Of a stretch of 64,000 bases of DNA, positions 32,978 through 64,000 are shown in pieces. Below the pieces are notes generated by a model. It saw only the letters and a program-made list of their open reading frames with translations. It did not search any database and was not told the DNA's origin. The stretch comes from Ruditapes philippinarum (lineage: Eukaryota): contig NW_026863189.1 of the NCBI RefSeq assembly GCF_026571515.1, positions 1 through 64,000 on the forward strand, given 5' to 3'. The translations under genes and the position numbers were made by a program. The first letter of the stretch is position 1. Every line of letters begins with the position of its first letter.

Positions 32978-33139
32978 NNNNNNNNNNNNNNNNNNNNNNN
33001 NNNNNNNNNNNNNNNNNNNNNNNNNNNNNNNNNNNNNNNNNNNNNNNNNNNNNNNNNNNNNNNNNNNNNNNNNNNNNNNNNNNNNNNNNNNNNNNNNNNN
33101 NNNNNNNNNNNNNNNNNNNNNNNNNNNNNNNNNNNNNNN
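32978..33139. other. Assembly gap (162 N)
   Basis: Run of N. Confidence 1.
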
Positions 33140-41135: not shown

Positions 41136-42374
41136 ATGTCTATAATTGTACATATATTTTTACTACATGGGATTTTAATCCACAGATGTGTTTGTGTTAA
41201 AAATTCTACGTCTTTAAAGGATATGAGCAATGCGGAGTTTATGGAGAAATTATTTGAAGGATACAGCGTAAATATCCCTCCAGTTTTGAATTTCGAAAGA
41301 CCAGTTTTGATAGACTTAGCTTTATACCATTTATCTATAGACAATATAGAAATGAAAAGCAAGATTATCAGTGGTCGCATTATATTTGGTTTAGAATGGA
41401 CTGATGAATATTTAAAGTGGAACTCCTCTGATTTCAAGGACATTTCAAAGCTTTCATTACAACCAAACCAAATTTGGTTACCTGATTTGTATATTGGCAA
41501 TTCAGAGGATTTGTTTACGTTTTTAAAAGCAGAGAACGTGCAAGAAGTAATTTTGACAAGCAATGGTGTAGTGGAAGCTTGGCTGTATCTACATATTGAA
41601 GTCGGAATAGATTTGGACATTTACAAATATCCCTTTGACGAACAAATATGTGAATTTGAGTTTAGTTCATGGATGCATAGTGACCGCAAAATAGACATAT
41701 CAGTTAGGCAGGGTGCTGAAGAATTAAAAGCTTCGGAATTATCCAGGCAAAGTGGGGAATGGGACATTATACAGATAGAAAGGAAAAGAACAATTAAGTC
41801 ATTTGATGAATATTTGACCAATTTTACTCTAATTCAGTATAAATTCTCATTGAAGCGCAAATGGCAATATACAATTTTGAATTTGGTAACACCCGTTGTC
41901 ATAACATCGTTACTGAATCCTTTGTCATTTTTGCTCCCTGTTGACAGTGGGGAACGAATATCACTAAGTAATACTGTATTTCTGACAATGGCTGTATTTT
42001 TCTCGATAGTGAATCATTCTCTTCCAAAGACATCTGAAGGAGTTCCAATTATTGTTGCATATATCGGTCTACAAATGCTTGGAAGTTCTCTCACTATTGT
42101 GTTTACAATTTTCAGTCTTGCCCTGTATTATAGAAACCAAAACAACCCGTCAGTATTCAAGTTCATTTGTGGAAAAATAAGAAAACACAAAAAAGAAATC
42201 AACGATGAAAATGGTTCAACTGATCCAGTTAGTGAGACGAATATTCAAAACAACGTCCAAAGGGAATCTTGGATGAAAGCTTCAAATATGTTGGACACAG
42301 CTTGTTTTTGGCTTTCACTTTCTTGGAATGTGGTACTTTTAACACTAGTTATGATGAAAGTCACTGGAGAATAA
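41136..42374 (+). CDS. Intronless nicotinic acetylcholine receptor-like pentameric ligand-gated ion channel subunit, copy A (412 aa)
   Basis: Signal-peptide-like N-terminus; WTDEYLKW, IWLPDL, YPFDEQIC, GEW motifs; M1-M2 LLPVDSGERISLSNTVFL; four TM segments with a short M3-M4 loop. Confidence 0.95.
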   Translation: MSIIVHIFLLHGILIHRCVCVKNSTSLKDMSNAEFMEKLFEGYSVNIPPVLNFERPVLIDLALYHLSIDNIEMKSKIISGRIIFGLEWTDEYLKWNSSDFKDISKLSLQPNQIWLPDLYIGNSEDLFTFLKAENVQEVILTSNGVVEAWLYLHIEVGIDLDIYKYPFDEQICEFEFSSWMHSDRKIDISVRQGAEELKASELSRQSGEWDIIQIERKRTIKSFDEYLTNFTLIQYKFSLKRKWQYTILNLVTPVVITSLLNPLSFLLPVDSGERISLSNTVFLTMAVFFSIVNHSLPKTSEGVPIIVAYIGLQMLGSSLTIVFTIFSLALYYRNQNNPSVFKFICGKIRKHKKEINDENGSTDPVSETNIQNNVQRESWMKASNMLDTACFWLSLSWNVVLLTLVMMKVTGE

Positions 42375-42659
42375 TGATGTTCGTAAATCATTTCTTTTTA
42401 AATTTCTGCAACAATTATTGTGCAATTTGAATTTGAATTATGACAAAAAACACGATGTGTTATCATTCTGAAAAAGAAAATGTCATTTGCATTGACATTA
42501 CTTTTTATGATAATTTGTCCTGATGTTGTGGCGATGTTACTACATTTAGAATAAAAATTATAAACTAAAATACATGATGTTTTTAATTCTATTCTATTTA
42601 TTTATCATAATTTATTTTATTTTATTGTATTTTATTTTTGTGTATGGGGTGGGGGTGCG

Positions 42660-42780
42660 TTGCACCAACACTGCATTATTTCAGGCACGAATTGGCACCT
42701 AAGTAAAACCATCGACGCTCCGTAGCTTCCTCACATAAACAAAATCCAAAGTTCATGTCGGGATTCGAATCCACAACGGG
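42660..42780 (-). mobile_element. Degenerate tRNA-derived SINE fragment
   Basis: gggattcgaatccac reverse B box preceded by agcttcctcacat, similar to 16770-16820. Confidence 0.5.
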
Positions 42781-44742
42781 CCAAGTTAATGTATATATAG
42801 GTTCATTTTGTACATATCGTCCATGTTTTTTTTCTTATATTACTGTACAATGCTTACATTTGGTCATACTTCTCGCAACACCAACATTCTTAACGAAATA
42901 TTAATATTGTAAGATTTCACACAAATATACTGAAACAAAAAAGAAACTTTCTCCAAGTTTGAATGTAGATATGTTAGTACAGTTTTTCAATCCTTTTGAA
43001 ACTCGATTTTTACGTTGAATAAACATATCGGGCTTTTATACGTGATTAGCTGGGCGATTTTGCAAACAAAACGAGTTTTACAAACTACTAATTGTATATA
43101 TGTGTGTGTACATCTAAGTGGTACCTTTGAACAACTGGCACATACTTTGCGAAAGTTTCTTTTTTGGTTCAGTATATATATGTAAAACTTAACTTGCATA
43201 GGAAGATCCTCCAAGTGCTTTGAAGGCAAAGAATATTGCTTTCAAAAACAATAGGGATCAACAATGGTTTGCATAAACCCTTGTCTCATGATTTTTGTCG
43301 ATCGAATATATAGTAAAGTTAAAATTCATCTGAAAAGAAAGTGCAATAAGTTCATAAATAGCAGTATGTCATTTTCTTTTAATCGACTAGTTAAGTCCAA
43401 AGAGCAAAACATATTATAGAATACGACTTTGGATATGAAAGTTCTATACAAGAGTTGACACCAGTAAAGGAAATCAGTGATAGTCCTTTTTATTATTTCA
43501 AATGAACAGAAATATTTAGTATTGTGGGACAAATGGCTTCACCTGTGATCTTCTATTTTGATCTATCCCGTGATGCTTTTAAATTTAAAATTTTATCATG
43601 ATAAATAGACAATATGAGTTGTTAGCTAATTATGTAAAAAAAAAATTTAATCATTTTTGAAACTGCGCAAAAATATACTGCTAGTATTTAGTGAGCACAA
43701 CTGATTGCTAAAGTTCGTTTCTTATCAAGCATTGGAATGAAATGACTCTACAAATATCTTTGATTAATACTGATCAATAAATATGAAATTATTACAGTAC
43801 GTCTTTGTTGCAGCTATCATACAACATTTGTTAAATGTTTTTATCTATATTATGTTAATATTGTAACATTAGCTCATTCCCAATCAGATACAATGTATAG
43901 TCGATCTCTTAACGAATGAAACTTAAAAGATGCATTGTCCTGGCTTGTTTACAATATTGATTTATAATTAGGTAAGATTTTAATTACAATATAAATAGAC
44001 ATATGTAAATACCAATACTAAAAATCATATTGAATATAGAAAATAGTGTATATCTGTTGAACAGATTATAAGAAATCATAACCTAGCGTTTTTAGAAAGA
44101 AAAAAAATATGTCTTTTTTAACTTGTAACTTAATTAACAGCGGTGTTGATATTTTAATTGTTCTATAATATACGTATCCTCGGACTGGAAAACTTTTCCC
44201 GCATTGTACTTATTTATATGTGGTATCAATTTGCATGTTTTACTGTGTATTTGTATTACTATTTGACTCATTATTAAATGTCTGCCATGAAATGACTGGA
44301 AATAAAGAATTTACTTGAACAATGGCATAAAGGAGAGTTTCATAAAACTGTTATTCTTTATTTCACTTAGCAATTTATATTCCTGTTTAACGATGTTCTT
44401 GATGTAATTAACTGTATCAATAAATTTAATCTCATTAATTTTGTTTAAGAATGATATCGAAGTAGTAAGAGTTTTAGAAAAAAAATAAAGCAGTTGTCGA
44501 ATAGTTACAATCAAAAACAAATATATGCCACGGTTTTAAGTTTTGAAATTGTCTTTTGAATAACCAGATGATAATCTGTATCATCCGTTTTAAAGTGAAT
44601 TAGTATTTGTCTATATATAATAGGTATGCTATACATTAGATAATTGCGTTTATAGTATTTAGTATCAGACATAACAGCAGACCAAGAAAAAATAATATAT
44701 GCCTGTTGATGGCAAATATGTGATACATAATCCAAACTTTCA

Positions 44743-45080
44743 TATATATATATATATATATATCAAAAACGCTATTTAAATTTGCCGTAGCTTTCGGCCT
44801 TGCGGTTTTCTTCAGCAGCATTTATTTCATATACAAATATATCAAACAAAACAATGGAAGTGACGTAACGTCAATGAACGACGCCCGCCGTGGCATTGGT
44901 TGCCGTCTGCCGCGTTATTCTTTTGTATTAACTCCATACGGTCTATAGGTTCTTAATTTATTTTTCCACAAATTTTCTATTGTTTTCGGTAGTGGTCATT
45001 ACCGTATAGCTTTTCCAGTCCCATATATATATATATATATATGGATATATTAGATAATGAATGAATGAATGAATGAATGA
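44743..45080. repeat. (TA)n tracts at ~44743-44763 and ~45023-45042 flanking a GC-richer ~260-bp segment; (GAAT)n at ~45057-45080
   Basis: Read directly from the sequence. Confidence 0.8.
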
Positions 45081-45619
45081 AGCATTTAAAACTGTATCAA
45101 AATTTTTTCTATCAATGATTTTATAAGAGTAAGCAAATGATTTTGTATTGTTTTTATCAGTATTAATTTTGAAACATTCCTGAAAAATGTATTCATCGTA
45201 GACCGATCATCCACTTGAATAATTTGCAATAATAATGATTAGCTGATAAAGTTTAAAGGAACCATAATGTCGTCTCTGGCTGTATATGATTACAACAGTA
45301 AAAAACATGTTTGTTCTACTCGATTACTCAAATGTGTTATATTAATCAATTAAACACCTAGAAATATCATTATTTTAAATCAAATGGAAGAAAAAATCTA
45401 TTTGATCTCTTTGTCTTGGCCATTAACAGAGCCCTAAAAACACGTTAAAAGCATTGTCTTATTTGTAAATATCTGTTCATGTTAAACAAATATATTTAGC
45501 CAGCATCTCATTAACATTTTCCTGTTTATTTACTTCAAATGAATCAATATCAAGTGACAATTTATAAAAATAGTTTGTATACCATTTAGCTCGCTTAGAA
45601 AAGTAGTAGAGAGAGGAGA

Positions 45620-46879
45620 ATGCTGTTTAACAAAATGGGGAGTTTGATGAAAACTCTTCAAATAATTGTACTTCAGTATTTTTTATCTTTTAAATCGGCT
45701 TCCTCAAAAAACAAAATCCGAAATGGAGAATTTCTGGAACAATTATTTGACGGATACAGCAAATATATGTTGCCTATTTTGGACATTGAAAAACCAGTTG
45801 ACGTGAATCTTTCTTTGTATTATATTTCTCTGAATGATGTAGACACAAAACAAAAGACAGTCAGTGCTACTCTTATTCTAGAGTTGCAATGGATTGATCA
45901 GTATTTGATATGGAATAATTCTGGAGAATATGATGTGCCGTCTAGAATATCCATTGATTCGAAATCTATTTGGTTACCTGATTTGTTCGTTGGAAATAAC
46001 GAAGGACTCTTAACGTTTTTAACACCAGATGATATCAAAAACGTTATACTTTTAAGGGATGGACATATTTCAGCATACCCGTATAAAACGTTTGAACTTG
46101 GTGTTGATATAAATATCTATAAATATCCATTTGATACACAAGTGATTGAACTTGAAATTATGCCTTGGAGCTACTACTCGCATGAACTAGCAATAAGGGA
46201 TATAACGGAGGTTAATGAAAGCAATGCCGTTTTTAAACAATTCAGAGGAAATGGAGAATGGGATCTTGCTACCTGGTCTCGAGAAAACTTTTATTTGTCT
46301 AATGAAATTGACAGTTATACAACAGTTTCAACAGTTATTTATAAATTTACTTTAAAGCGAAGATGGTTGTATACAATTTTAAATTTAGTAGCGCCCGTTG
46401 TAATCACATCGTTACTGAATCCTTTGTCATTTTTGCTCCCTGTTGACAGTGGAGAACGCATATCACTAAGCAATACCGTATTTCTGACACTGGCTGTGTT
46501 TTTCACAATTGTGAGCAACTCATTACCTCAAACATCTGAAGGATCACCGATATTTGTCACGTATATCGGTCTACAAATGTTCGGAAGTGTTCTGACAATT
46601 GCATTTACAATCATAAGTCTGGCATGTTATTATAGCGACAATGACCTTAGACAAAACAATGCACTACTTCGTGTCCTGTGTAGTATGTGTGGTAAAAATA
46701 AAACCGAAAAATGCGCTGATTCTAATTCTGAAAACCTGGAAGAGTATGATTCTGAGCATACACATAGTCGGGAAATAGGAAAAATCTGTTCTAAAATTAT
46801 TGATAGAGTGTGTTTTTGGATGTCTCTTCTCTGGAATCTTTGTCTTTTATCCATTACAATAATTATAGCAATGTCTTAG
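45620..46879 (+). CDS. Intronless nAChR-like pLGIC subunit, copy B (419 aa; ATG 45635 corresponds to the paralog starts)
   Basis: WIDQYLIW, IWLPDL, YPFDTQ, GNGEW and DSGERISL motifs; four TM segments; aataaa at ~46944. Confidence 0.95.
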   Translation: MLFNKMGSLMKTLQIIVLQYFLSFKSASSKNKIRNGEFLEQLFDGYSKYMLPILDIEKPVDVNLSLYYISLNDVDTKQKTVSATLILELQWIDQYLIWNNSGEYDVPSRISIDSKSIWLPDLFVGNNEGLLTFLTPDDIKNVILLRDGHISAYPYKTFELGVDINIYKYPFDTQVIELEIMPWSYYSHELAIRDITEVNESNAVFKQFRGNGEWDLATWSRENFYLSNEIDSYTTVSTVIYKFTLKRRWLYTILNLVAPVVITSLLNPLSFLLPVDSGERISLSNTVFLTLAVFFTIVSNSLPQTSEGSPIFVTYIGLQMFGSVLTIAFTIISLACYYSDNDLRQNNALLRVLCSMCGKNKTEKCADSNSENLEEYDSEHTHSREIGKICSKIIDRVCFWMSLLWNLCLLSITIIIAMS

Positions 46880-48918
46880 TTAGACTTATGTCTTCTAACT
46901 TCTTTCAATGGTAAAGCAGACTACATCTTAACGGCGTGTCATCAATAAATACAAAATCCATTTGATTATCGACCTTATGAACTACAAGCATTTGCTTTAT
47001 ACAAACTATTTTTATTTGTTTGGGTCGTCAGATCAAACAAATAATGTTAGCGAAATGTCAGACCCTGATATGCTTAATTGCAAAAATCCGCAAGTAGTCC
47101 GTCACGAATTCCTCGAAGCGGTTACTTTATAAGTACACTAACGCCGAAAAAAAATTAAGGGTAAAGATTGTCAAATGACAGGCGCATTAATTTTAAAACT
47201 TTTTCAGGAAAGAAAAAATAGTTCCCAATTGGTCGAATATTTCTAATATTGTGTAATTCTTTAACATTTCCGCAAATGACCGAAAATATATTCAAATAAT
47301 TTTGTTACGCGGATGAATATTATTTTAATCAATAAAAATTGCTCGGCTATTTCCGTAAAGCTTCGGATTATTGTGATCCCCTAAATGAACATTTATTATT
47401 TAGACTTTCTGAAAAATAAAGTAAGAATGGTGACTCTAGGACAGGGACGACTTTATGCAGTCGACGATCGATAATAATTTAATTTAATTCGAAATTAATA
47501 AGGATCACAAACACTAATGAAGAATAATTTGGTTTGCTTCAGGCTGTTTTCTTATAACTTCCCCGTGGTCCAGGGGTTACACGCCCGTTTCAGAAGCGAG
47601 AGGTCAGGGGTTTAAATCCCAGTTAATGCAACTCATGTTGTTGTTTGTTCTTTTTATTTAATTGTTTAACCAAAATAAACATTGAATTGCATATCAGTGT
47701 TGCAATTAGCCTTATAGCTAGTTTACTACAGTTTTAACACTGGAAATAGCATTGATGGCACTACACAAAAACAAATTGGTTTATAATCTTACACCATTCA
47801 CATTTCCGAAATTCTGAGACCAAAACAAATTCAACGCCTTCTGTGCTTTGATTATATTTTAGTATTGGTATTGCATTTTTTTCCATTCCTTTGTAGGTTT
47901 TATTTTTACCTAGATTAAAACATTTTTGTAACAGCCTGTTCATGTTGTATGTTTCGGAATATTTATATATTTATTGGACAAAAAGGCTAAAAAAGCTGAT
48001 TAAATGTGAAAAAAGGAAAGTACTAAGAAAAAATCTGGAAAACGGGAAAAACTTCGTGAGCAATAATACCAATAGTAAAAATGTGGAAATTGCAGACTCG
48101 GTTTGATTGAGTCTGATCCTGAGGGATAACGAAAGATGCAATATCTCTCACGTCCCCTAGCACCGGTTTCAAGCAGTGTTAAATTTTCAACACAATCAAT
48201 GAATGGATGGAAGATATTAGAGGACAACACTGAACTGATTAACGGTGCAACATTTTACACTTGCCGCACAGCACTTGATAGCTGATGCTGTGAATTAAAA
48301 CAAAAACTCAGAATGGACATAAAAATTTTAATTTTAAATTAATGCCTATTAACAAAATATCATCAAATTCATCAATCTTTTCAAAGGGCTAAATAATTAA
48401 TTGTTTAGCCTTTGTATGTCCTTGATTTCATAGTCTACGAATGCAGTAGCTTTAAAGTTATAGATCTACATTCAACGCGAAATAAAACTGTTTTAATTAA
48501 GTTATCAAAATATATCCTTGAATCTTTATCATTGACAAATACAATCATAAACTCTTAACATAATTAGTTGTTTTTTTCTTGCATAAAGTTTTTCTTTCAA
48601 ATTATTGTTTATTTATTTCAAAAAGTTGTATATAATTGGGTGTATTTGTGTGTTTTAACCTTCTACGGGACTATTTTTAATCAAATCTTTATTAACAAGA
48701 CGATGTACATATGTATAACTGTAAATAAAATTATTTTATGGTTTGTTCTGTTCTGTAATGTAAAACCATGCGTTGAGAAATAAGGAAAGCATCTGGAAAA
48801 CAATATAAAATACAACAACGTGTTATTGACTTTATAAGGGATTAACTTTATTAATAAAGACACCACACTGTTCTTTTTACATCCGCATGTGGCATTTTCT
48901 ACTCACTTTCTACAGACT
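46880..48918 (+). repeat. 3' flank of copy B, duplicated at 52475-54504 (copy C) and more divergently at 56623-57815 (copy D)
   Basis: Near-identical collinear sequence, which also explains the duplicated spurious ORFs 48000-48230/53539-53829 and 48568/54189. Confidence 0.9.
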
Positions 48919-48959
48919 AGTACTAAATTCAATACAGTGTGATTTGATGTCAATTGAAT

Positions 48960-49345
48960 ATATGCGAAAGAAGAGTAGTTTGTATTAAATGTGTCCATAA
49001 TATGCAAAGATACTGTATAGTGTTTGCACTTAATTCATCCATAATATGCGAAGAAATAAGACGTTTATGGCTTTTATCCATAATTTGCAAAGAAAAAGAA
49101 AGTTAAACTCTGAATTTATCCATATTTTGCAAAAATATTGTATAGTTTTTGCATTAACTTTATCCATAATATGCGAACAAATAATAGTTTAGCACTAAAT
49201 TCGTTATACGAAGATACTGTGAAGTTTAGTGCTAAATTTATCCATAATATGAATAAGAACAGAATAGTTTAGCGTTTAATTTATCTATAATATGCGAAGA
49301 AACATTTAAATTTTTGCGCTTATTTATCCATAATGTGGAAAAAAC
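48960..49345. repeat. Degenerate ~40-bp minisatellite (tttatccataatatgcgaagaa core); paralog at ~57860-58170
   Basis: About nine imperfect units with the recurring atccataatatg motif. Confidence 0.75.
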
Positions 49346-51223
49346 AGCTTACTTTATCCAATGATAATAGGTCAAAAGAGATAGGATAAAAGAAAACAAG
49401 CTTTACAATCGTAAACGTATAGATATGCTTTAAATGCATACCATGAAATAGCTTTAAAGGCAGTAATGAAGCGGAGGAAGTCTTGTGAGCTGCGTCAACA
49501 TAAGAAACAGCAATTTTGGAATAATTTACGTCAGAGCTTGATAAGAGATCATGTGATGTAAAACCTGAATAATGCCGGGAAATTTTTTGTAGATTATTTC
49601 GAAACTTTAACAGGATATTATTAAAGTATTCTATGTCTATGTAATTATCACAATTTATGAATTATATGTTTCATAACAAGTTTGTAATAGTTTTATTTCT
49701 AACATATGTTTGACAATTGGTATGTTTGCAAATGAAAGACAGTGACTATAGATGCATAAAATAGGGGAAAACAGAATCCCTAAAGAAATCCCAACACGTC
49801 AAAATTGAAAATGACGCAGGCTCGGTTTGATGCTGTTCAAGCCTTGCAACATTGGGAAATTGTGTTGTAAAACTCCGATTTACTGTTATCACACTGCGAT
49901 ATTCGTTTTGAGATATCCAAATCGTAATCGTATACATGTATGTTTTGGATCGAAAAATATTCGCATTGTTCAGCAACTGCAGAAATAAAGGTGATGTTTT
50001 TATTAATGTTATACTGCATCTTTTGTTTCACCCCAACAACGCTAAATCATTTTGAATGGACAATCCATATATAAATCTGGACAAAACTATTTAATTTTAA
50101 AATTTGCAGTAATTTAAAAACGGCTGATCTTGGTCTCCACTGGTTGAATGTGTAGTATCTGTTGCCAGCAAGCTTTGTAACTGTTTAAAAGATTTTTTGT
50201 TAAATCCATCTTATAACTAATTGAATCCTTAGTTTCAATTGAATAACACAAAAAATACTGATGATTTACTATTACTATTTACTATTACAAATTTCAGATT
50301 GTTCTAAAATCAATTTCCTTTTTTATCTTGTTTGTAATGAATATTATAGTTCAAAAACATATAAAAAGAAATGAATAATGAATTGAGAATTAAAATCAAA
50401 ACTTGTGATAGGTTTCTTTTAAAGCATTTTGTGATCAGCAAATGATACCAGGTGTCATTCTTCTAATTAATCGTAAATGAGTTTTTCAATAATGGTACAA
50501 CATCCAGTATTCACTGATAAGAGTAAATGAGTACGGAGAGGAAATCAGGCAAACATTATATTGTTTTAACATATAGTTTCTTGTGTTGTAATGACTCTTA
50601 GATCACTTAGAATTATATTCTTTTAATATCAAATGAAGAAATATATGAAATATCTTATAACTTGATATAAAAAAATAAAACGTTAAAAGCATTGTAAGTA
50701 TTTGTTCATATAAAACAATGAAAATGGCAAAAGAAATTAAAGTTTATTTTCAATATCTTCTAAAATCACATTACCTGAATGATATTGACTACATAAAAGT
50801 AAAGATTTAAGACGAAATACAAGGAGTCTATCATATAAAGAAAAAAAAACAGTAAAGGAAACATAATACTGTTTCTAGCTCTAGATGAATACAGTTTAAT
50901 AACTGTTTGTTGTACTCATCTGCTTAATCGTGTTATAATTATCCTCTAATCACTTAATATCGCATTTTTTTTTATCAAATGGAAGAAAAATCTATTTAAC
51001 ATTAACCCTAAAAAACATAACACGTTAAAAGCATTGTCTAATTTGTAAATATGTGTTCATGTTAAACAAATATATTTAGACACTATCTCATTTACATTTT
51101 CCTATTAATTTACTTCAAATAAAACAATATCAAGTGATACATAAATTGTAATTTATAAAAGTAGTTCGTATACCATTTAGTTCGGAAAGGAAAGCAGCAG
51201 AAAGTAAATGTTCATTAAACAAA

Positions 51224-52474
51224 ATGGGGAGTTTCATGAAAACGCTAACTATTCAAATAATTGTAATTCAGTATTTGTTATTTTCTGAGACGTTTTCTTC
51301 GAAAAACAAAATACGAAATGGAGAATTTCTGGAACAATTATTTGACGGATACAGCAAATATATGTTGCCTGTTTAAGACATTGAAAAACCAGTTGACATG
51401 AATCTATCTTGGTATCTGATTTCTCTGAATGATGTAGACACAAAACAAAAGACAGTCAGTGCTACTCTTATTCTAGAGTTGCAATGGATTGATGAGTTTT
51501 TGATATGGAATAATTCAGAGGAATATGATGTGCCGTCTAAGTTATCCATTGATTCGAAATCTATTTGGTTACCTGATTTGATAATTGGAAATGAAGAAGG
51601 ACTCTTAACGTTTTTAACACCAGATGAAATAAAAAACGTTATACTTTTGAGAAATGGACACATTTCAGCATACCCGTATAAAACGTTTGAAGTTGGTGTA
51701 GATATAGATATCTATAAATATCCATTTGATACACAAGTAATTGAACTTGGAATAATGCCTTGGACTTATTCCTCGCAGGAACTAGTAATAAGTGATATAA
51801 CGGAGGTTGATAAAAGCAATGCCGTTTTTAAACATTTCAGAGGAAATGGAGAATGGAACCTTGCTATTTGGTCTCGGAAAAACTATATCATGTCTTATGA
51901 AAACAACAGTTATTCAAAATATTCAGCAGTTAATTATAAATTTACTATAAAGCGAAGATGGTTGTATACAATTTTAAATTTAGTAGCGCCCGTTGTAATC
52001 ACATCATTACTGAATCCTTTGTCATTTTTGCTCCCGGTTGACAGTGGAGAACGTATATCACTAAGCAATACCGTATTTTTGACACTGGCTGTGTTTTTCA
52101 CAATTGTGAGCCACTCATTACCTCAAACATCAGAAGGAGCACCGATATTTGTCACGTATATCGGTTTACAAATGTTCGGAAGTGTTCTGACAATTGTATT
52201 TACAATCATAAGTCTGGCATGTTATTATAGTGACAAAGACCTTAGACAAAACAATGCACTACTTCGTGTCCTGTGTAATATGTGTGGTAAAACTAAAACC
52301 GAAAAATGCGCTGATTCTAATCCTGAAAACCTGGAAGAGTATGATTCTGAGCATACACATAGTCGGGAAATAGGAAAAATCTGTTCTAAAATTATTGATA
52401 GAGTGTGTTTTTGGATGTCTCTTCTCTGGAATCTTTGTCTTTTATCCATTACAATAATTATAGCAATGTCTTAG
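51224..52474 (+). pseudogene. nAChR-like pLGIC subunit, copy C, premature stop at codon 51
   Basis: ATG 51224 aligns with the copy D start. cct gtt TAA gac (51374-51376) stands where D has cct gtt TTA gac; the rest of the frame is open to 52474. Confidence 0.85.
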
Positions 52475-55371
52475 TTAGACCTATGTCTTCTAACTTCTTT
52501 CAATGGTAAAGCGGACTACATCTAAACGGCGTTTTATCAATAAATACAAAAATCCATTTGATTATCGACCTTATGAACTACAAGCATTTGCTTTATACAA
52601 ACTATTTTTATTTGTTTGGGTCGTCAGATCAAACAAATAATGTTAGCGAAATGTCAGACCCTGATATGCTTAATTGCAAAAATCTGCAAGTAGTCCGTCA
52701 CGAATTCCTCGAAGCGGTTACTTTATAAGTACACTAACGCCGAAAAAAAATTAAGGGTAAAGATTGTCAAATGACAGGCGCATTAATTTTTAAACTTTTT
52801 TCAGGAAAGAAAAAATAGTTCCCAATTGGTCGAAGATTTCTAATTTTGTGTAATTCTTTAACATTTCCGCAAATGATCGAAAATATATTCAAATAATTTT
52901 GTTACGCGGATGAATATTATTTTAATCAATAAAAATTGCTCGGCAATTTCCGTAAAGCTTCGGATTATTGTGATCCCCTAAATGAACATTTATTATTTAG
53001 ACTTTCTGAAAAATAAGGTAAGAATGGTGACTCTAGTACAGGGACGACTTTATGCAGTGGACGATCGATAATAATTTTAATTTAATTCGAAATTAATAAG
53101 GATCACAAACACTAATTAAGAATAATTTGGTTTGCTTCAGGCTGTTTTCTTATAACTTCCCCGTGGTCCAGGGGTTACACACCCGTTTCAGAAGCGAGAG
53201 GTCAGGGGTTTAAATCCCAGTTAATGCAACTCATGTTGTTGTTTGTTCTTTTTATTTAATTGTTTAACCAAAATAAACATTGAATTGCATATCAGTGTTG
53301 CAATTAGCCTTATAGCCAGTTTACTACAGTTTTAACACTGGAAATAGCATTGATGGCACTACACAAAAACAAATTGGTTTATAATCTTACACCCTTCACA
53401 TTTCCGAAATTCTGAGACCAAAACAAATTCAACGCCCTCTGTGCTTTGATTATATTTTAGTATTGGTATTGCATTTTTTTTCCATTCCTTTGTAGGTTTT
53501 ATTTTCACCTAGATTAAAACATTTTTGTAACAGCCTGTTCATGTTGTATGTTTCGGAATATTTATATATTTATTGGACAAAAAGGCTAAAAAAGCTGATT
53601 TAATGTGAAAAAAGGAAAGTACTAAGAAAAAATCTGGAAAACGGGAAAAACTTCGTGAGCAATAATACCAATAGTAAAAATGTGGAAATTGCAGACTCGG
53701 TTTGATTGAGTCTGATCCTGAGGGATAACGAAAGATGCAATATCTCTCACGTCCCCTAGCACCGGTTTCAAGCAGTGTTAAATTTTCAACACAATCAATG
53801 AATGGATGGAAGATATTAGAGGACAACACTGAACTGATTAACGGTGCAACATTTTACAGTTGCTGCACAACACTTGATAGCTGATGCTGTGAATTAAAAC
53901 AAAAACTCAGAATGGACATAAAAATTTTAATTATAAATTAATGCCTATTAACAAAATATCATCCACTTCATCAATCTTTTCAAAGGGCTAAATAATTAAT
54001 TGTTTAGCCTTTGTATGTCCTTGATTTCATAGTCTACGAATGCAGTACCTTTAAAGTTATAGATCTACATTCAACGCGAAATAAAACTGTTTTAATTAAG
54101 TTATCAAAATATATCCATGAATCTTTATCATTGACAAATACAATCATAAACTCCTAACATAATTAGTTGTTTTTTTCTTGCATAAAGTTTGTCCTTTCAA
54201 ATTATTGTTTATTTGTTTCAAAAAGTTGTATATAATTGGGTGTATTTGTGTGTTTTATCCTTCTACGGGACTATTTTTAATCAAATCATTATTAACAAGA
54301 CGATGTACATATGTATAACTGTAAATAAAATTATTGTATGGTTTGTTCTGTTCTGTAATGTAAAATCATGTGTTGAGAAATAAGGAAAGCATCTGGAAAA
54401 CATTATAAAATACAACAACGTGTTAATTAACCTTATTAATAAAGACACCACACCGTTCTTTTTACATCCGCATGTGGTATTTTCTACTCACTTTCTACAG
54501 ACTAGAAACAGCAATTTTGGAATAATTTAAGTCAGAGCTTGATAAAGATCATGTGATGTAAAAAATATAATGAGTAAATGAGTACGGAGAGGAAATCAGG
54601 CAAACATTATATTGTTTTAAAATATAGTTTCTTGTGTTGTAATGACTCTTAGATCACTTAGAATTATATTCTTTTAATATCAAATGAAGAAATATATGAA
54701 ATATCTTATAACTTGATATAAAAAAAATAAAACGTTAAAAGCATTGTAAGTATTTGTTAGTATAAAACAATGAGAATGGCAAAAGAAATTAAAGTTTATT
54801 TTCAATATCTTCTAAAATCACATTACCTGAATGATATTGACTACATAAAAGTAAAGATTTAAGACGAAATACATTTGAGTAAAAACTGTTGAGTTTCATA
54901 CGAGAGTGAGTCTACATGTTCTGCAATACTAAGTATATTTTCTAATTTATTTAAAGAGTTATACTACAATGGTTAGCTGATAAGGAGTCTATCATATAAA
55001 GAAAAAAAAACAGTAAAGGAAACATAATACTGTTTCTAGCTCTAGATGATTACAGTTTAATAACTGTTTGTTTTACTCATCTGCTTAATCGTGTTATAAT
55101 TATCCTCTAATCACTTAATATCGCATTTTTTTATCAAATGGAAGAAAAATCTATTTAACATTAACCCTAAAAAACATAACACGTTAAAAGCATTGTCTAA
55201 TTTGTAAATATTTGTTCATGTTAAACAAATATATTTAGACACTATCTCATTTACATTTTCCTATTAATTTACTTCAAATAAAACAATATCAAGTGATAAT
55301 TTATAAAAGAAGTTCGTATACTATTTAGTTCGGAAAGGAAAGCAGCAGAGAGTAAATGTTCATTAAACAAA

Positions 55372-56622
55372 ATGGGGAGTTTCATGAAAACGCTAACTAT
55401 TCAAATAATTGTAATTCAGTATTTGTTATTTTCTGAAACGGTTTCTTCGAAAAACAAAATACGAAATGGAGAATTTCTGGAACAATTATTTGACGGATAC
55501 AGCAAATATATGTTGCCTGTTTTAGACATTGAAAAACCAGTTGACATGAATCTATCTTGGCATCTGATTTCTCTGAATGATGTAGACACAAAACAAAAGA
55601 CAGTCAGTGCTACTCTTATTCTAGAGTTGCAATGGATTGATGAGTTTTTGATATGGAATAATTCAGAGGAATATGATGTGCCGTCTAAGTTATCCATTGA
55701 TTCGAAATCTATTTGGTTACCTGATTTGATAATTGGAAATGAAGAAGGACTCTTAACGTTTTTAACACCAGATGAAATAAAAAACGTTATACTTTTGAGA
55801 AATGGACACATTTCAGCATACCCGTATAAAACGTTTGAACTTGGTGTAGATATAGATATCTATAAATATCCATTTGATACACAAGTAATTGAACTTGAAA
55901 TAATGCCTTGGACTTATTCCTCGCAGGAACTAGTAATAAGTGATATAACGGAGGTTGATAAAAGCAATGTCGTTTTTAAACATTTCAGAGGAAATGGAGA
56001 ATGGAACCTTGCTATTTGGTCTCGGAAAAACTATATCATGTCTTATGAAAACAACAGTTATTCAAAATATTCAACAGTTAATTATAAATTTACTATAAAG
56101 CGAAGATGGTTGTTTACAATTTTAAATTTAGTAGCGCCCGTTGTAATCACATCTTTACTGAATCCTTTGTCATTTTTGCTCCCGGTTGACAGTGGAGAAC
56201 GTATATCACTAAGCAATACCGTATTTCTGACACTGGCTGTGTTTTTCACAATTGTGAGCAACTCATTACCTCAGACATCTGAAGGAGCACCGATATTTGT
56301 CACGTATATCGGTCTTCAAATGTTCGGAAGTGTTCTGACAATTGCGTTTACGATTATAAGTCTGGCATGTTATTATAGCGACAATGACCTTAGACAAAAC
56401 AATGCACTACTTCGTGTCCTGTTTTATATGTGTGGTAAAACTAAAACCGAAAAACGCGCTAAATCTATTCCTGAAAACCTGAAACAGTACGATCATAAGC
56501 ACACACATAGTCAGGAAATAGGAAAAATATGTTCTAAAATTATTGATAGAGTGTGTTTCTGGATGTCTCTTCTATGGAATGTTTGTCTTTTGTCCATCAC
56601 TATGATAATAGCAATGTCTTAG
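55372..56622 (+). CDS. Intronless nAChR-like pLGIC subunit, copy D (416 aa)
   Basis: Complete ORF with the same motifs as copies B and E. Confidence 0.95.
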   Translation: MGSFMKTLTIQIIVIQYLLFSETVSSKNKIRNGEFLEQLFDGYSKYMLPVLDIEKPVDMNLSWHLISLNDVDTKQKTVSATLILELQWIDEFLIWNNSEEYDVPSKLSIDSKSIWLPDLIIGNEEGLLTFLTPDEIKNVILLRNGHISAYPYKTFELGVDIDIYKYPFDTQVIELEIMPWTYSSQELVISDITEVDKSNVVFKHFRGNGEWNLAIWSRKNYIMSYENNSYSKYSTVNYKFTIKRRWLFTILNLVAPVVITSLLNPLSFLLPVDSGERISLSNTVFLTLAVFFTIVSNSLPQTSEGAPIFVTYIGLQMFGSVLTIAFTIISLACYYSDNDLRQNNALLRVLFYMCGKTKTEKRAKSIPENLKQYDHKHTHSQEIGKICSKIIDRVCFWMSLLWNVCLLSITMIIAMS

Positions 56623-58320
56623 AAAGACCTGTGTCTTCTAACTTCTTTCATTGGTAAAGCAGACTACATCTTAACGGCGTTTCATCAATCAATGCAAAAG
56701 CTCTATTTGATTATCGACCTTATGAACTACAAGTATTTGTTTTATACAAACCATTTTTATATTTAAGTATTGGTACTGTATTTTTTTTCATTCCTTTATA
56801 GGTTTTATTTTTATCTTGTTTAAACATTTTTGTAACAGCCTGTTTATTTTGTATGTTTAGGAATATATCGATTGGGTAAAATGCTAAAAAAGGTGATTTA
56901 TTGTGAAAAGTGGGAAGTACCAGTGAAAAAAAAATCTGGAAAACGAGACAATCTTCGTGAGCAATAACAACAATAGTAAAATATGAAAATTGCAGACTCG
57001 GTTTGTTTGAGTCTGTTCCTGAGGGATTAACAAAAGATGCAATATCTCTCACGTCCCCTAGTACCGGTTTAAGCGGTATCAAATTTTCAACACATGCAGT
57101 ATACGGATGGAAGGCATTAAAGGACAACAATGAGATGATTTTTACAGTTGCCGCACAACACTTGATAGCTGGTGCTGTGAATTAAAACAAAAACTAGAAA
57201 AAGGACATGAAAATTTAAATTATAAATTAATGTGTTTAAACAAAATATCATCAACTTCATCAACTTTTTCAAAAGGCTTAAAAGTTAATTGTTTGGCCTT
57301 TGTATGCCCTTGATTTCATAGTCTATGAATACAGTACCTTAAAAGTTATAGATCTAATTTCAACGCGAAATAAAACTGTTTTAATTAAGTTATCAAAATA
57401 TATCCATGAATCTTTATCATTGACAAATACAATCATTAACTCTTTACATAATTAATTAATTTTTTTTCTTGCATAAAGTTTGTCCTTTTAAATTATTGTT
57501 TATTTATTTCAAAAAGTTGTTTATAACTGTGTGTATTTGTGTTTTAACATTCTACAGGACTCTTTTTAATCAAATCTTTATTAACAAGACGATGTACATA
57601 AAAAATAACTGTAAATAAAATTATTTTGTACTTTGTTCTGTTTGTAATGTTATACCATATTGTGTTGAGAAATAAAAGAGGAAATAATCTGGAAAATAAT
57701 ATAATTTACAACAACGTGTTATTGACTTTATAACACATTAACCTTATAAATTAAACACGCCACACCGTTCTTTTTACATTGGCATGTTACATATTCTACT
57801 CACTCTCTACAGACTTACTGCAACTAAATGCAATAAAGCGTGATTTGATGTCAATTGAATATATGTGAAGAAACAATAGTTTTGCATTAAGTTGTCTATG
57901 ATATGTAAAGATAAAGAAAGTTTAGCTCTGAATTTATCCATATTTTGCAAAGAAATTGTATAGCTTTTGCATTAAATTTATCCAGAATATGCGAATAAAC
58001 AAAAAAGTTTAGCACTAAATTCGTTATTCGAAGATACAGATTGAGTGTAGTTTAGTGCTAAATTTATCCATAATATGAATAAGAACAGTAAAGTTTAGCG
58101 TTTAATTCATCCATAATATGCGAAGAAACATTTAAATTTTAGCGCTTATATATCCATAATGTGGAAAAACAGCTTACTTTATCCAATGATAATAAATCAA
58201 AAGATAAAAGAAAACATGCCTTCCGATCGTAAACGTATAGATATGCTTAAAATGCGTACCCTGAAATAGCTTTAAAGACATTAATGTAGTGGATGAAGTC
58301 TTGTGAGCTGCGTCAATATC

Positions 58321-58835
58321 AAACTCCTCACAGTGATTACCTCCCTTGGCAGAATTGTAATCACAGCCTTCAAAGACGTCACATGATGATGAAAGTCACA
58401 TGACGTAACGTCGAAATTCAAATGTAAATATTGACCGTTACAAAGAAAATCTAACGTTATTTTTCTCTTTCTGTTTTATTTTTAACTTTCAGTGCCTACG
58501 TTCGATATAGTTTATCAAAAAATTATCGAAAGTATACAAAATAACGAAAAATAAATTCAAAAGCTTAAAAATATAAAATATCAAAATATTGTCTCGGTAG
58601 AAAATAGGCCCTAATCTCATAATTTTTAAAATTATTTCTAAATATTCATATTATTTATTTATTTATTTATTCATTAACATTGTTAAATAAATGAGAGAAA
58701 ACTTATCTGATAGATAAAAGCTGTAGATAAAACAATTTTTGAAAAAATATAGTATATCAGAAATTCTGATATATCGGGACCATGGTGGCAGAGATCTACG
58801 CCGAAGAATTAAGGGGAGATCACTGTGGGGAGATT
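58321..58835. mobile_element. Non-autonomous TIR element with ~10-bp target-site duplication
   Basis: Left end aaactcctcacagtgat..ccctt versus right end aagggga gatcactgtggggagatt. gcgtcaatat is duplicated at 58310-58319 and 58836-58845; the paralogous site at ~49492 is empty. Confidence 0.8.
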
Positions 58836-60291
58836 GCGTCAATATAAGAAACGACAAGTTGGAATAATTTACGTCAGAGCTTGATAAAGGATCATGTGAT
58901 GTAAAACCTGAACAATGCCGGGACTATTTTTGTAGATTATTTCGAAACTTCATCAGGAAAACATTAAAGTATTCTATGTCTATGTAATCATCACAATTTA
59001 TAAACTATATATTTCATGATAAGTTTGTAATAGTTATATTACTAACGTAGGTTTGACAATTGGTATCTTTGCAAATGAAAGACAGTGACTAATGATGCAT
59101 AAAATAGGGAAAAACAGACTCCCTAAAGAAAGCCCAACATGTGAAAATTGAAAATGTTGCAGGCTCGGTTTGACTGAGCCTGTTCAAGCCTTGCAACATT
59201 GGCAAATTGTGTTGTTAAACTCCGATTAACCATTATCACACTGTGATATCCGTTTTGAGATATCCAAATCGTAATCGTATACATGTATATTTTGTATTGA
59301 AATATTTCCACATTGTTCAGCAACTGCAGATATAAAGGTGATGTTTTTCATCGTATGTTATACTGCATCTTTTGTTTCGCCCTAACAACGCTAAATCATT
59401 TTTAATGGACACTCCATATTTCAATCTGAACAAAACTATTTATCATTTTTGGAAAATTTTAAGATATGCAGTGATTTAAAAACGGCTGATCTAGCTTGGT
59501 CTCCACTGGTTGAATGGGTAGTTTGTGTTGCCCGCAAGCTATGTAACTGTTTAAAAGATTTTTTTATTAAATGCATCTTATAACTAAATGATTCCTTAGT
59601 TTCAATGATTTCCTTTTACATCTTGTTTTGAATGAATATAATAGTTCAAAGTAAAAAACATACAAAAATAAATGAATGATGATATGAGAATTAAAATCAA
59701 TACTTGTGACTGGTTTCTTTTAAATCATTATGTGATCAGCAAATGATAGCAGGTGCCATTCTTTCAATTAATCGTAAATGAGTTTGAAGATAATGGTACA
59801 ACATCCAGTATTCACTGATAAGAGTAAATGAGTACGGAGTGGAAAAATAATCAGGCAAACATAATTTTGTTTTAAAATATAGTTTCTTGTGTTGTAATGA
59901 CTCTTAGATCACTTGGAATTATATTCTTTTAATATCAAATGAGAAAATTGATATAAAATATCTTATAATTTGATATTTACAAAGTAAAACGTTAAAAGTA
60001 TTGTATATTTGTTCATATAAAGCAATTAGAACGGAACACGGAATTAAAGTCTATTTTCAATATCTTCCAGAATCACATTACCTGAATGATATTGACTACA
60101 TAAAAGTAAAGATTTAAGACGAAATACATTTCAGTAAAAATATTGAGTTTCATACGAGGGTAGGTCAACATGTTCTGCAATAAGAAGTATATTTTCTAAT
60201 CTATTTAATTTATTTAAAGAGTTATACTACAATGGTTAGCTGGTAAGGAGTATATCATATAAAGAAAAAAAAAATAAAAGGAAACATAATA

Positions 60292-60529
60292 TGAGCCGCG
60301 TCACGAGAAAACCAACGTCATGCGTTTGCGACCAGCATGGATCAAGACCAGCCTGCGCATCCGCGCAGTCTGATCAGGATCCATGCTGTTCGCTTACAAA
60401 CCCTATAACAAGTAGAAAAACTGAGCGAACAGCATGGATCCTGATCAGACTGCGCGGATGCGCAGGCTGGTCTGGATCCTTGCTAGTCGCAAACCCATTA
60501 TGTTGGTTTTGTCGTGACGCGGCGGCTCA
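60292..60529. mobile_element. Palindromic MITE with TA target-site duplication
   Basis: Long inverted arms (tgagccgcgtcacgagaaaaccaac ... gttggttttgtcgtgacgcggcggctca). TA on both sides (60290-60291, 60530-60531). Paralogous sites upstream of C (~50866) and D (~55027) are empty (cataaTActgtttc). Confidence 0.92.
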
Positions 60530-60901
60530 TAATGTTTCTAGCTCTATATGATTGTAGTTTGATAACTGTGTGTTGTACTGACTCACTCAATCGTTTTATA
60601 ATTATCCTCTAAACACTTAATATCGCATTATTTTTTATCAAAAGGAAGAAAAATCTATTTCATCTCTTTGTCTTGGTCATTAACAGAACCCGAACCCTTA
60701 GAATCATAACACGTTAAAAGCTTTTTCTAATTTGTATATATTTGTTCATGTTAAACAAATTTATTTAGACAATATCTCATTTACATTTTCCTATTAATTT
60801 ACGTCAAATAAAACAATATCAAGTGACAATTTATAAAAGTAGTTCGTACATTATTTAGTTCGGAAAGGAAAGCAGCAGAGAGTAAATGCTCATTCAACAA
60901 A

Positions 60902-62152
60902 ATGAGGAGTTTCATAAAAACGCTAACTATTCAAATAATCATACTTCATTATTTTTTATTGTTTAAGTCTGTTTTTTCGAAAAACAAAATCCGAAATGAC
61001 GAATTTCTGGAACAATTATTTGACGGATACAGCAAATATATGTTGCCGGTTTTGGACATTGAAAAACCAGTTGACATAAATCTATCTTGGTATCTGATTT
61101 CTCTGAATGATGTAGACACAAAACAAAAAACAGTCAGTGCTACTCTTATTCTAGACTTACAATGGATTGATGAATATTTGATATGGAATAATTCAGGGAA
61201 ATATGATGTGCCCACTAAGTTATCGATTGATTCGAAATCTATTTGGTTACCTGATTTGCACGTTGGAAATAACGAAGGACTCTTAACGTTTTTAACACCA
61301 GATGAAATAAAAAACGTTATACTTTTAAGAAATGGACACATTTCAGCATACCCGTATAAAACGTTTGAAGTTGGTGTAGATATAGATATCTATAAATATC
61401 CATTTGATACACAAGTAATTGAACTTGAAATAATGCCTTGGACGTATTCCTTACAGGAACTTGTAATAAATGATGTGACGGAGGTTGATGAAAGCAATGC
61501 CGTTTTTACACAATTCAGAGGAAATGGAGAATGGAACCTTGCAACCTGGTCTCGGAAAAACTATATCATGTCTTATGAAAACAACAGTTATTCAAAATAT
61601 TCAGCAGTTAATTATAAATTTACTATAAAGCGAAGATGGTTGTTTACAATTTTAAATTTAGTAGCGCCCGTTGTAATCACATCATTACTGAATCCTCTGT
61701 CATTTTTGCTACCTGTTGACAGTGGAGAACGTATATCACTAAGCAATACCGTATTTCTGACATTGGCTGTGTTTTTCACAATTGTGAGCAACTCATTACC
61801 TCAAACATCTGAAGGATCACCGATATTTGTCACGTATATTGGTCTACAAATGTTCGGAAGTGTTCTGACAATTGCGTTTACGATTATAAGTCTGGCATGT
61901 TATTATAGCGACAATGACCTTAGACAAAACAATGCACTACTTCGTGTCCTGTTTTATATATGTGGTAAAGCTAAAACCGAAAAAGGCGCTGAATCTAATC
62001 CTGAAAACCTGGAAAAGTATGATTCTGAGCATTCACATAGTTGGGAAATAGGAAAAATGTGTTCTAAAAGGATTGATAGAGTGTGTTTTTGGATGTCTCT
62101 TCTCTGGAATGTTTTTCTCTTATCCATCACAATAATAATAGCAGTATCTTAG
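60902..62152 (+). CDS. Intronless nAChR-like pLGIC subunit, copy E (416 aa)
   Basis: Complete ORF with the same motifs as copies B and D. Confidence 0.95.
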   Translation: MRSFIKTLTIQIIILHYFLLFKSVFSKNKIRNDEFLEQLFDGYSKYMLPVLDIEKPVDINLSWYLISLNDVDTKQKTVSATLILDLQWIDEYLIWNNSGKYDVPTKLSIDSKSIWLPDLHVGNNEGLLTFLTPDEIKNVILLRNGHISAYPYKTFEVGVDIDIYKYPFDTQVIELEIMPWTYSLQELVINDVTEVDESNAVFTQFRGNGEWNLATWSRKNYIMSYENNSYSKYSAVNYKFTIKRRWLFTILNLVAPVVITSLLNPLSFLLPVDSGERISLSNTVFLTLAVFFTIVSNSLPQTSEGSPIFVTYIGLQMFGSVLTIAFTIISLACYYSDNDLRQNNALLRVLFYICGKAKTEKGAESNPENLEKYDSEHSHSWEIGKMCSKRIDRVCFWMSLLWNVFLLSITIIIAVS

Positions 62153-62369
62153 TAAGACCTATGTTATCTTTATAACTTCTTAAATTAGTAAAGCAGTCTA
62201 CAACCTAACGGCATTTCATTAAGAAATACAAGAATTCCATTTTATCATCAATCTTTTGAACTACAAGCATTTGCTTTATACACTATACAAACAATACTTC
62301 TGCATATTTTTGCATTTCTATTTTGTTCTTTGTATTCCTTTATAGGTTTTATTTGATAGTATAACATAG

Positions 62370-62837
62370 GTGTCGTGCCGACAAAAATTGAAAAAACACA
62401 ATAAACTTTGTCCTTCGACTGGCATGAAAGGTTTGAATTTTCTGCATGACAACGCTCCTGCACACAATGAAGCTATAAGTAATTTTTGTTGGAGAAAATC
62501 AGTAACTGTCCTTCCAAATCCATCGTTTTCTCCAGACATGGGACCCTGTGACTTTTCGCTCTTTCTTAGACTGAAGAAAATACATATTGTAGATCATTGC
62601 TGCTACAACAGCAGAAATGGAATTGGATCGGCAATTTTTCAATTATTGAAAAGTTTACCTAAGATGGTCCATGTTGTTCCATTCAAAATAAGATTTTGTC
62701 GTCTGAAACTCTGTATTTCAATGCGGAGAGATAATTTCGAAAATCGAAAGGTTGAAATAGAAATTTGTACAATATATTTGCTTTTTTAATATAATTATTG
62801 ACCGTATTGAAAAATAAATTAGTGACCCACCATTGTA
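62370..62837 (+). mobile_element. Tc1/mariner transposase C-terminal remnant
   Basis: ORF 62370-62789 contains FLHDNAPAH and PSFSPDMGPCDFSLFLRLKK, matching mariner HDNARPH and YSPDLAPxDF catalytic motifs; 5'-truncated. Confidence 0.9.
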
Positions 62838-62839
62838 AA

Positions 62840-62980
62840 GCGACTGCGAATACTTCAAATAGTTTAATTTCAGTATTTTATGTGTTGAATCTGTTTCTTC
62901 AAAATACTTAAAGCAATGGAGAATGTCTGGAAGAATTGATTGAAGAATACAGTAAATGCATTGTGCCGGTTTTGGACATT
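62840..62980 (+). pseudogene. Degenerate 5' relic of a sixth pLGIC copy (F)
   Basis: 62915-62980 reads NGECLEELIEEYSKCIVPVLDI versus NGEFLEQLFDGYSKYMLPVLDI in D. The upstream part matches the signal-peptide DNA with a stop and indels; similarity ends at 62980. Confidence 0.75.
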
Positions 62981-64000
62981 TTATGCCCTTACCATGAATT
63001 TTTTGTATACATTCACAAATGTTGTGTAAATCCGATGAACAGAAATATGTAATTTAAATGTTGTTATTCATTGTATAGTACGTTACGTATTTTCATCTTT
63101 TGAAAGCCAATGTACAAAAAATAGATGCACATTCAAAAAAATATGCAAATAGATGCTGTTTTGACTAAACAAGATAAAAGTCCAATTGATAACTAACAAT
63201 GCATACATTTCTTGCATGAAGACATATAACACGTATGTTAAATGTATGTGGTGTGGAGGGTCTATAATTTGAAATTTCGTGTTGCACAAGAGTGTGTGCC
63301 TCACACTTAACTTCTGTTGAGTATATAAACGACCCAGAATGAAACGGAAAGACTAATATAGTTGATAAACGACTGAAATGATGTTTGAGATATTGATATA
63401 TATTGTGGTATATTTGTAGTTGTTTTGTTTGTTTGTTTGTTTTCTGTTGTTGTTTTTGGCCTGTTTAAATTTGAGGTCAATAGACTTGGAATCTTATTGA
63501 ATTATATCTTTGCCGCAATTAAAACTGTCACAAGTGCTTATGGGGCTACAAATTATAATTATACCAATAAGTTACTAAAAATGACTAAGATATTTGATAA
63601 TGATGTCAAAGTAAAAATAGTATGAATCAGACACAGAAAAATTAATCTAATGTACGAAAAATAAGATAATTAAAAGTTTACATCAATAAATTTTTCTATT
63701 TATTGCTGATGAATATTGTGTTACGCACCTTAATAATTATTTATTGGCTACTTGAGTGACTATTTAGCGCATACATTTATTGATAAATATTTATGACAAT
63801 TGTCAAATACATTTTAGTATAATGGCTACCAGTAAGTCATAATTGCCATCAATTATGGACTTTGGTTTCACTTAGTTTTTATGAATAGTTTATATTACAA
63901 TGCTATTCATTCTGGCCAATGTTTCGTGCTTTTGTTTGGATCTTTTTATTTACTTTGTCCAATACTATCAATTTTCCATTAAAAATTTTAAAAGAAAAGT

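Follow-up and report, generated by a model that had tools for sequence, protein, structure and literature searches.

We have analysed a stretch of 64,000 nucleotides from the Manila clam Ruditapes philippinarum (NCBI RefSeq assembly GCF_026571515.1, contig NW_026863189.1, positions 1 to 64,000 of the forward strand; hereafter the window), in which the segment 41136-62980 carries a tandem array of single-exon genes for pentameric ligand-gated ion channel (pLGIC) subunits. These genes most probably represent a lineage-specific, tandemly duplicated subfamily of orphan subunits that resemble the nicotinic acetylcholine receptor (nAChR) and lack the Cys-loop disulphide. Judging from sequence comparison, the subfamily appears to be old and selectively maintained in clams, and it is confined neither to this cluster nor to this species.

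Loss of the Cys-loop disulphide in the array

The genes are named A to F along the contig. An earlier note on this DNA had described an intronless cluster of nAChR-like channels. Five single-exon pLGIC genes are indeed found in the window, although C is broken by a TAA, a sixth gene, F, lies beyond the window, and the segment at 62900-62989 is a relic only. The genes and the segments that carry the argument are as follows.

41136-42374, + strand: gene A, single-exon pLGIC subunit, 412 amino acids (aa), intact; Pfam Neur_chan_LBD and Neur_chan_memb
41607-41651, + strand: Pro-loop of gene A, IDLDIYKYPFDEQIC; first Cys-loop cysteine gone, second retained
45620-46879, + strand: gene B, single-exon pLGIC subunit, 419 aa, intact
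46103-46147, + strand: Pro-loop of gene B, VDINIYKYPFDTQVI; both cysteines gone
51224-52474, + strand: gene C, D-like copy with an in-frame TAA, 94% identity to D
51698-51742, + strand: Pro-loop of gene C
55372-56622, + strand: gene D, single-exon pLGIC subunit, 416 aa, intact
55711-55740, + strand: loop A of gene D, IWLPDLIIGN
55846-55890, + strand: Pro-loop of gene D, VDIDIYKYPFDTQVI
56191-56256, + strand: M2 of gene D, SGERISLSNTVFLTLAVFFTIV
60902-62152, + strand: gene E, single-exon pLGIC subunit, 416 aa, intact; both Cys-loop cysteines gone
61376-61420, + strand: Pro-loop of gene E
contig 64401-65645 (L006:1489-2733): gene F, sixth array member, just outside the window, 414 aa

In B-E the 15-residue Pro-loop reads VDI(N/D)IYKYPFDTQVI. 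Residue equivalences to human alpha7 have been taken from a phmmer alignment, the loop C part of which is uncertain. In this alignment Val159 and Ile173 of D lie opposite Cys128 and Cys142 of alpha7. The Cys-loop pair is replaced by Val and Ile in B-E, and by Ile and Cys in A and F; two cysteines 13 residues apart, the strict mark of a Cys-loop, occur in none of A-F. In addition, the ectodomain of B-E is cysteine-free, with no cysteine before residue 333, and in A Cys172 is the sole cysteine between the signal peptide and M3. The earlier statements that the first cysteine is lost in A and both in B-E, and that the ectodomains of B-E hold none, are borne out by the alignment and by the Pro-loops themselves.

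The acetylcholine (ACh) binding site has also changed. Tyr93 in loop A of alpha7 corresponds to Gly122 in D, Trp55 in loop D to Ile83, and the vicinal Cys190/Cys191 in loop C to Asn and Ser, so the Cys-Cys pair of alpha subunits is absent. On the other hand, Trp149 in loop B is conserved as Trp180 in D and is near-invariant in the wider clade described below (22/23). The equivalents of the loop-C residues Tyr188/Tyr195 are Tyr225/Tyr233 in C-E, Asn/Val in B, and Phe/Phe in A, and loop C of gene B differs from that of C-E. The complete aromatic box for ACh (loop-A Tyr, loop-B Trp, two loop-C Tyr, loop-D Trp) is found in none of the genes, and in C-E it appears to be degraded rather than erased. 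The two hallmarks that the earlier note held to be lost, the loop-A Tyr (replaced by Gly) and the Cys-Cys pair, are indeed gone, but C-E keep both loop-C Tyr equivalents. Such loss is general in the bivalve expansion of these genes, since the loop-A Tyr is retained in just 8 of 53 Cys-bearing relatives.

The elements of the pore and of its coupling have been kept. Besides the loop-B Trp, the genes retain YPFD (in every copy), the pre-M1 Arg, SGER with the -1' Glu, the 9' Leu and the Pro of the M2-M3 loop, and the M1-M2 stretch is identical across A-E. P167 and D169 of the Pro-loop and P256, the proline of M1, are invariant in a 22-sequence alignment of the clade. Only about 50 residues make up the M3-M4 loop, and the outer-ring 20' position has Asn or His instead of the Glu of alpha7. 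The earlier description of a retained loop-B Trp, Pro-loop proline, GER motif and 9' Leu together with a short M3-M4 loop agrees with these results. The residues specific to the clade are only Gly122, Thr260, Gly305, Val310 and Asn403; we have sought residues that might compensate for the disulphide among these sites, and none lies near the base of the loop.

The best solved sequence relative is human alpha7 (phmmer E = 1e-39, ~29% identity), with the M2 region nearly conserved, and 60/60 of the best matches in the PDB are nAChR or 5-HT3A. AlphaFold2 (AF2), with the clade alignment as input, gives a canonical pLGIC subunit with a mean predicted local distance difference test (pLDDT) score of 81.7 and four transmembrane (TM) helices at 246-267, 276-298, 308-334 and 372-415. 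The best Foldseek matches of this model are the muscle, alpha7 and alpha4beta2 nAChR subunits (E ~1e-31). The predicted fold is that of a normal nAChR subunit. The SGER motif, M2 and the placement in the tree agree in showing that A-F are cationic-type (nAChR/5-HT3) pLGICs.

Phylogenetic position of the genes

A profile search of 1.84 billion representatives has yielded 2150 matches at E <= 1e-30, and several of the top matches lack one or both Cys-loop cysteines. We have built a quick tree of 136 rows and a careful maximum-likelihood tree of 82 rows (IQ-TREE, LG+C20+F+G4 with posterior mean site frequencies, PMSF). The rows exclude cephalopod chemotactile receptors (CRs), Alpo4, anionic pLGICs and the ancient Cys-less sequences; the careful tree takes a fish 5-HT3A-like protein as its root, with fish AChR gamma and an alpha7-like protein of a cnidarian branching outside the bivalve group.

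Both trees contain a single 25-row clade in which zero members have both cysteines, with a support in the careful tree of 100 (ultrafast bootstrap)/99 (Shimodaira-Hasegawa-like approximate likelihood ratio test, SH-aLRT). Neither cysteine is present in 17 of these rows, only the second in 7, and only the first in 1. The clade is nested under nodes with supports of 98/97, 97/87 and 97/86 that are composed of Cys-bearing rows, and its neighbour is a Cys-bearing group that includes the C11557 cluster of R. philippinarum and a Mercenaria protein. Because the clade is nested among Cys-bearing bivalve paralogs with strong support, the Cys-less state is a secondary loss within the cationic nAChR-like group. 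The earlier note had proposed a secondarily Cys-less family of cation type, and the position of the 100/99 clade argues for it. The grouping with an ancient Cys-less clade that the note had named as speaking against its proposal has not emerged: the genes are nested in cationic rows and carry GER, in a tree that contained no ancient sequences. The missing cysteines are unlikely to be assembly errors, since independently assembled genomes of other species show the same absence.

Beyond Ruditapes, the named members of the clade are Mercenaria mercenaria P0010 and Mactra antiquata P0061 (KAL4224137.1). Another member, P0062 (MEW8548454.1), is deposited under a 'Candidatus Thiodiazotropha' metagenome-assembled genome; because this bacterium lives in symbiosis with lucinid clams, P0062 most likely derives from contaminating lucinid host DNA. 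Members of the clade are present in venerid and mactrid clams, and probably in lucinids. A second search with the clade alignment has found no further named members. P0061 is misnamed 'Cullin-3' in the public record.

Losses outside the clade have been observed as well. A tandem pair in Mya arenaria (P0047, XP_052778131.1) is Cys-less and is placed elsewhere in the tree. A shared origin of its loss with that of the clade is rejected by the approximately unbiased (AU) test (p = 0.0016, for a group defined post hoc, after the tree). P0065 from the nemertean Tubulanus polymorphus and P0072 from Bulinus truncatus are also nAChR-like proteins without the full Cys pair; both lie outside the clade on long branches. 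At the level of sequence, this points to recurrent disulphide loss across lophotrochozoan expansions.

Complement of the clade in the clam genome

The R. philippinarum genome holds at least 100 intronless nAChR-like matches (468 candidates). In a census of the Pro-loops of its 90 best-scoring nAChR-like loci, both cysteines are present in 84, and the six exceptions are only the genes of this cluster, A-F. Queries from the other two subclades of the clade, run on this genome, find nothing closer than A-F, so these genes are the whole complement of the clade in this assembly. The nearest Cys-bearing relatives in the genome are five intronless genes on contig C11557 at 74-173 kb (L007-L011), with 32-36% identity to D.

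Selection on the array members

We have calculated dN/dS, the ratio of non-synonymous to synonymous substitution rates, by the Nei-Gojobori method. Between A and F the ratio is 0.19 (dS ~1.4), and among the young copies B-E it is 0.34-0.49 (dS 0.08-0.20). The corresponding ratios of uncorrected proportions (pN/pS) among B-E differ by region:

M1-M3: 0.10
M4: 0.23
Ectodomain: 0.48
Short cytoplasmic loop: 1.86 (very few synonymous changes)

The ectodomain differences among B-E are concentrated at residues 181-204 and 212-237, which are loops F and C. The pore and coupling elements (-1' Glu, 9' Leu, YPFD, pre-M1 Arg, M2-M3 Pro) are under strong purifying selection. Overall, the selection pattern is that of working channels with a labile binding site rather than dead genes, and gene C may be newly dead.

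Expression

We have mapped RNA reads to positions 41000-46999, which cover genes A and B and the DNA between them. In an index look-up, no run recorded as RNA contains the stretch. Run X1 is small and only guessed to be RNA; gene A is tiled by four of its contigs (41000-42443), and the run leaves gene B and the unique intergenic DNA without coverage. The polyA run X18 gives about four reads on gene A. Run X12 gives about 15 reads on 45400-47000, i.e., gene B and the duplicated segment upstream of it, and practically none on the unique intergenic DNA at 43200-44600. Expression of A and B is real but low in the sampled runs.

Other parts of this region attract reads of a different kind. The repeats at 42800-43200 and 44800-45000, between A and B, show a tens-fold RNA depth. 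Because many of these reads continue into unrelated sequence, the repeats are transcribed repeat families and do not reflect local transcription. A segment of 34 nt at 42672-42705 has many RNA reads in runs X14 and X18 that extend on both sides into one consistent foreign sequence, and it is a short segment common to an expressed transcript from elsewhere.

Organization of the array and its surroundings

The open reading frames (ORFs) of A-E run in one continuous frame from a hydrophobic N-terminus or signal peptide to M4 and the stop, save for the TAA of C. All five are recognized by Pfam, with E = 1e-28 to 1e-39 for the ligand-binding domain (LBD, PF02931) and 1e-13 to 1e-17 for the TM domain (PF02932). 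Further features of the array are listed here.

45254-48920, + strand: tandem duplication unit of gene B, starting ~365 nt upstream of the ATG
51374-51376: TAA stop at codon 51 of gene C; TTA at the equivalent site in D
62900-62989, + strand: N-terminus relic, not a gene; 30 residues corresponding to D residues 27-56, 53% identity

The B unit (45254-48920) is 92.7% identical to the C unit (50853-54505), and over its first 1.75 kb it shows 86-87% identity to the D unit from 55014 on and to the E unit from 60528 on. The duplication units of the array measure 3.5-5.6 kb, and each starts ~365 nt upstream of the ATG. By these alignments, B-E are units of recent segmental tandem duplication, and A and F form an older pair. 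Gene C is probably a recent pseudogene or a broken allele.

The public annotation of this region deserves a comment. The NCBI model P0001 ('neuronal acetylcholine receptor subunit alpha-10-like', 610 aa) is a chimera of genes E and F, in which the C-terminal part of E (from MPWTYSLQ..., 61436-62152) is fused to F minus the signal peptide of F. It is an annotation artefact that masks two single-exon genes.

Several other ORFs have been inspected. An ORF at 62370-62789 (+ strand, 139 aa) adjoins the N-terminal relic and has an HDNAPAH-type motif recalling mariner/Tc1 transposases; a Pfam search with it gave no match. Another at 31176-31631 (+ strand, 151 aa) combines ten consecutive histidines with a hydrophobic N-terminus, and is possibly an exon of an unannotated gene; Pfam searches gave no match for it or for the ORF at 23623-24051. 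The antisense ORF at 41117-41620 was regarded as chance. Runs of N occupy 8116-8256 and 32978-33139 of the window.

A model for the loss, and its alternatives

For the subfamily of disulphide-free nAChR-like subunits we propose the following course. A single event in the ancestor of the clade probably removed the first cysteine, and the second, left without a partner, would then have given way to hydrophobic residues on repeated occasions. Where the disulphide had been, packing of side chains (Val/Ile, Val/Phe) may now secure the base of the beta6-beta7 loop, as it does in the bacterial channels GLIC and ELIC. The subunits would still form cation-selective pentamers. Their agonist site has most likely lost canonical ACh binding, because the loop-A Tyr, the loop-D Trp and the loop-C Cys-Cys are gone and the site varies between recent paralogs. 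The stronger proposal, that these are functional cation channels with a cysteine-free ectodomain gated by a non-cholinergic, possibly environmental ligand, i.e., a new class of clam receptor, we consider unlikely at present.

Certain points weigh against this account. Expression is very low in the sampled runs, and for X1, whose contigs cover gene A, the RNA label is a guess. Among the young copies dN/dS is reduced only to a moderate degree, and one of the six genes has a stop codon. P0037, a member of the clade, retains the first cysteine only, so a single loss of that cysteine would require either a re-gain or several independent losses. The tree contained neither the ancient Cys-less nor the cephalopod CR sequences, and the taxa given for the clade represent a minimum, since few of its members carry a species name. 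What we say on assembly, channel activity and ligands is inferred from sequence throughout.

One alternative takes the genes for environmental chemosensory receptors analogous to the cephalopod CRs, gated in siphon, mantle edge or palps by ligands other than neurotransmitters. They do resemble CRs in being intronless, tandem, divergent and nAChR-like, with a degraded ACh box and variable binding loops (PMC10338036, PMC13174522). However, hundreds of bivalve nAChR-like genes have the same traits, the published expression of the expansion points to development, stress and immunity (PMC6896357), and the read support here is faint. We would give the chemosensory idea only a small chance of being correct.

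It is equally doubtful that the genes encode subunits responsive to ACh or choline, or accessory subunits that co-assemble with Cys-bearing ones, by way of the loop-B Trp and the loop-C Tyr. Trp180, the cation-pi residue of loop B, is indeed kept in 22/23 of the clade, and both loop-C Tyr equivalents are present in C-E. Against this stand the Gly in place of the loop-A Tyr, the Ile in place of the loop-D Trp and the absent vicinal Cys-Cys, as well as gene B, in which Asn and Val take the places of the two loop-C Tyr.

The genes might also be functionless duplicates in decay, the loss of the disulphide being part of their degeneration. The stop codon in C, the relic at 62900-62989, the very low expression and the dN/dS of 0.34-0.49 among B-E would all suit such decay. 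On the other hand, five of the six ORFs are intact, the dN/dS between A and F is 0.19 at a dS of ~1.4, and the clade spans several clam families with a conserved pore (pN/pS of 0.10 in M1-M3, and an M1-M2 identical across A-E), so decay is quite improbable.

Finally, membership in the ancient eukaryotic Cys-less pLGIC clade, with the Cys-less state being primitive, would be in keeping with the dominance of lophotrochozoans, bivalves included, in that clade (PMC4795631). It is nevertheless extremely improbable, since our genes are nested with strong support within Cys-bearing cationic-type paralogs, in a tree that contained no ancient rows, and keep the cationic GE[R] signature along with an M2 that hardly differs from the one in alpha7. 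Moreover, members with one cysteine left (A, F, Mercenaria P0010 and others) look like intermediates of loss.

Comparison with known channels

Jiao et al. (2019) have described an intronless, tandem expansion of bivalve nAChR-like genes with degraded ACh sites, and in a single sentence mention 8 of 141 LBDs in C. gigas that lack the Cys-loop (PMC6896357). The clam genes are nested in this expansion and share its features, i.e., they are single-exon, tandem and of cationic nAChR type with diverged ligand-binding residues; the loss of the Cys pair, however, marks a whole supported clade across clam families and not scattered aberrant models. In comparison with alpha7 and the solved nAChR and 5-HT3A structures, the likeness lies in M1-M2, the -1' Glu, the 9' Leu, FPFD/YPFD, the pre-M1 Arg and the loop-B Trp, whereas the clam genes lack the Cys-loop disulphide, the loop-C Cys-Cys, the loop-A Tyr and the loop-D Trp.

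Among known Cys-less pLGICs, Jaiteh, Taly and Henin (2016) reported secondary cases in animals in the anionic clade only (nematodes, a spider and Oikopleura); the large lophotrochozoan and flatworm Cys-less group stands apart from these as a deep clade in which the GE[K/R] signature is missing (PMC4795631). The schistosome Cys-less ligand-gated channels likewise form a separate clade, without GEK (PMC9874803). The clam genes resemble these channels in that the Cys-loop cysteines are absent and the proline and aspartate of the Pro-loop are kept (PMC4795631, PMC9874803), but theirs is a secondary loss within the cationic nAChR-like clade. The MolluscaGenes preprint uses 'Cys-less' for something different, a clade defined by a missing YXCC of loop C and having PAR-type pores (PMC13174522). 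In the literature searched, we have found no account of a disulphide-free subfamily within the cationic clade that is both conserved and monophyletic.

The cephalopod CRs (CRT1, CRB1) and the annelid Alpo4 are also lophotrochozoan nAChR-like proteins without alpha-subunit signatures that are unresponsive to ACh or, in the case of the clam genes, expected to be so (PMC10338036). By description, CRs are intronless and tandem as well; a sensory role is demonstrated for CRs only. CRs and Alpo4 retain the Cys-loop disulphide. GLIC and ELIC are functional pentamers whose beta6-beta7 loop has no disulphide and whose position of the second cysteine is hydrophobic, as in genes B-E; they are only distant homologues, however, and the clam state is derived from a disulphide-bearing ancestor.

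Implications

The finding alone reveals no new sensory system. Its meaning lies in the scaffold, as animal nAChR-type receptors are regarded as needing the Cys-loop disulphide in order to fold and assemble. A clade that has no bridge, shows a constrained pore and extends over several clam families suggests that the bridge may be dispensable in a eukaryotic nAChR scaffold. Secondary loss occurs in the cationic clade too, more than once. The clade offers natural sequences for studying how the bridge is compensated and for engineering cysteine-free ectodomains. If non-cholinergic gating proves true, these clams would hold a long-maintained natural experiment, i.e., a disulphide-free scaffold of the cationic Cys-loop family.

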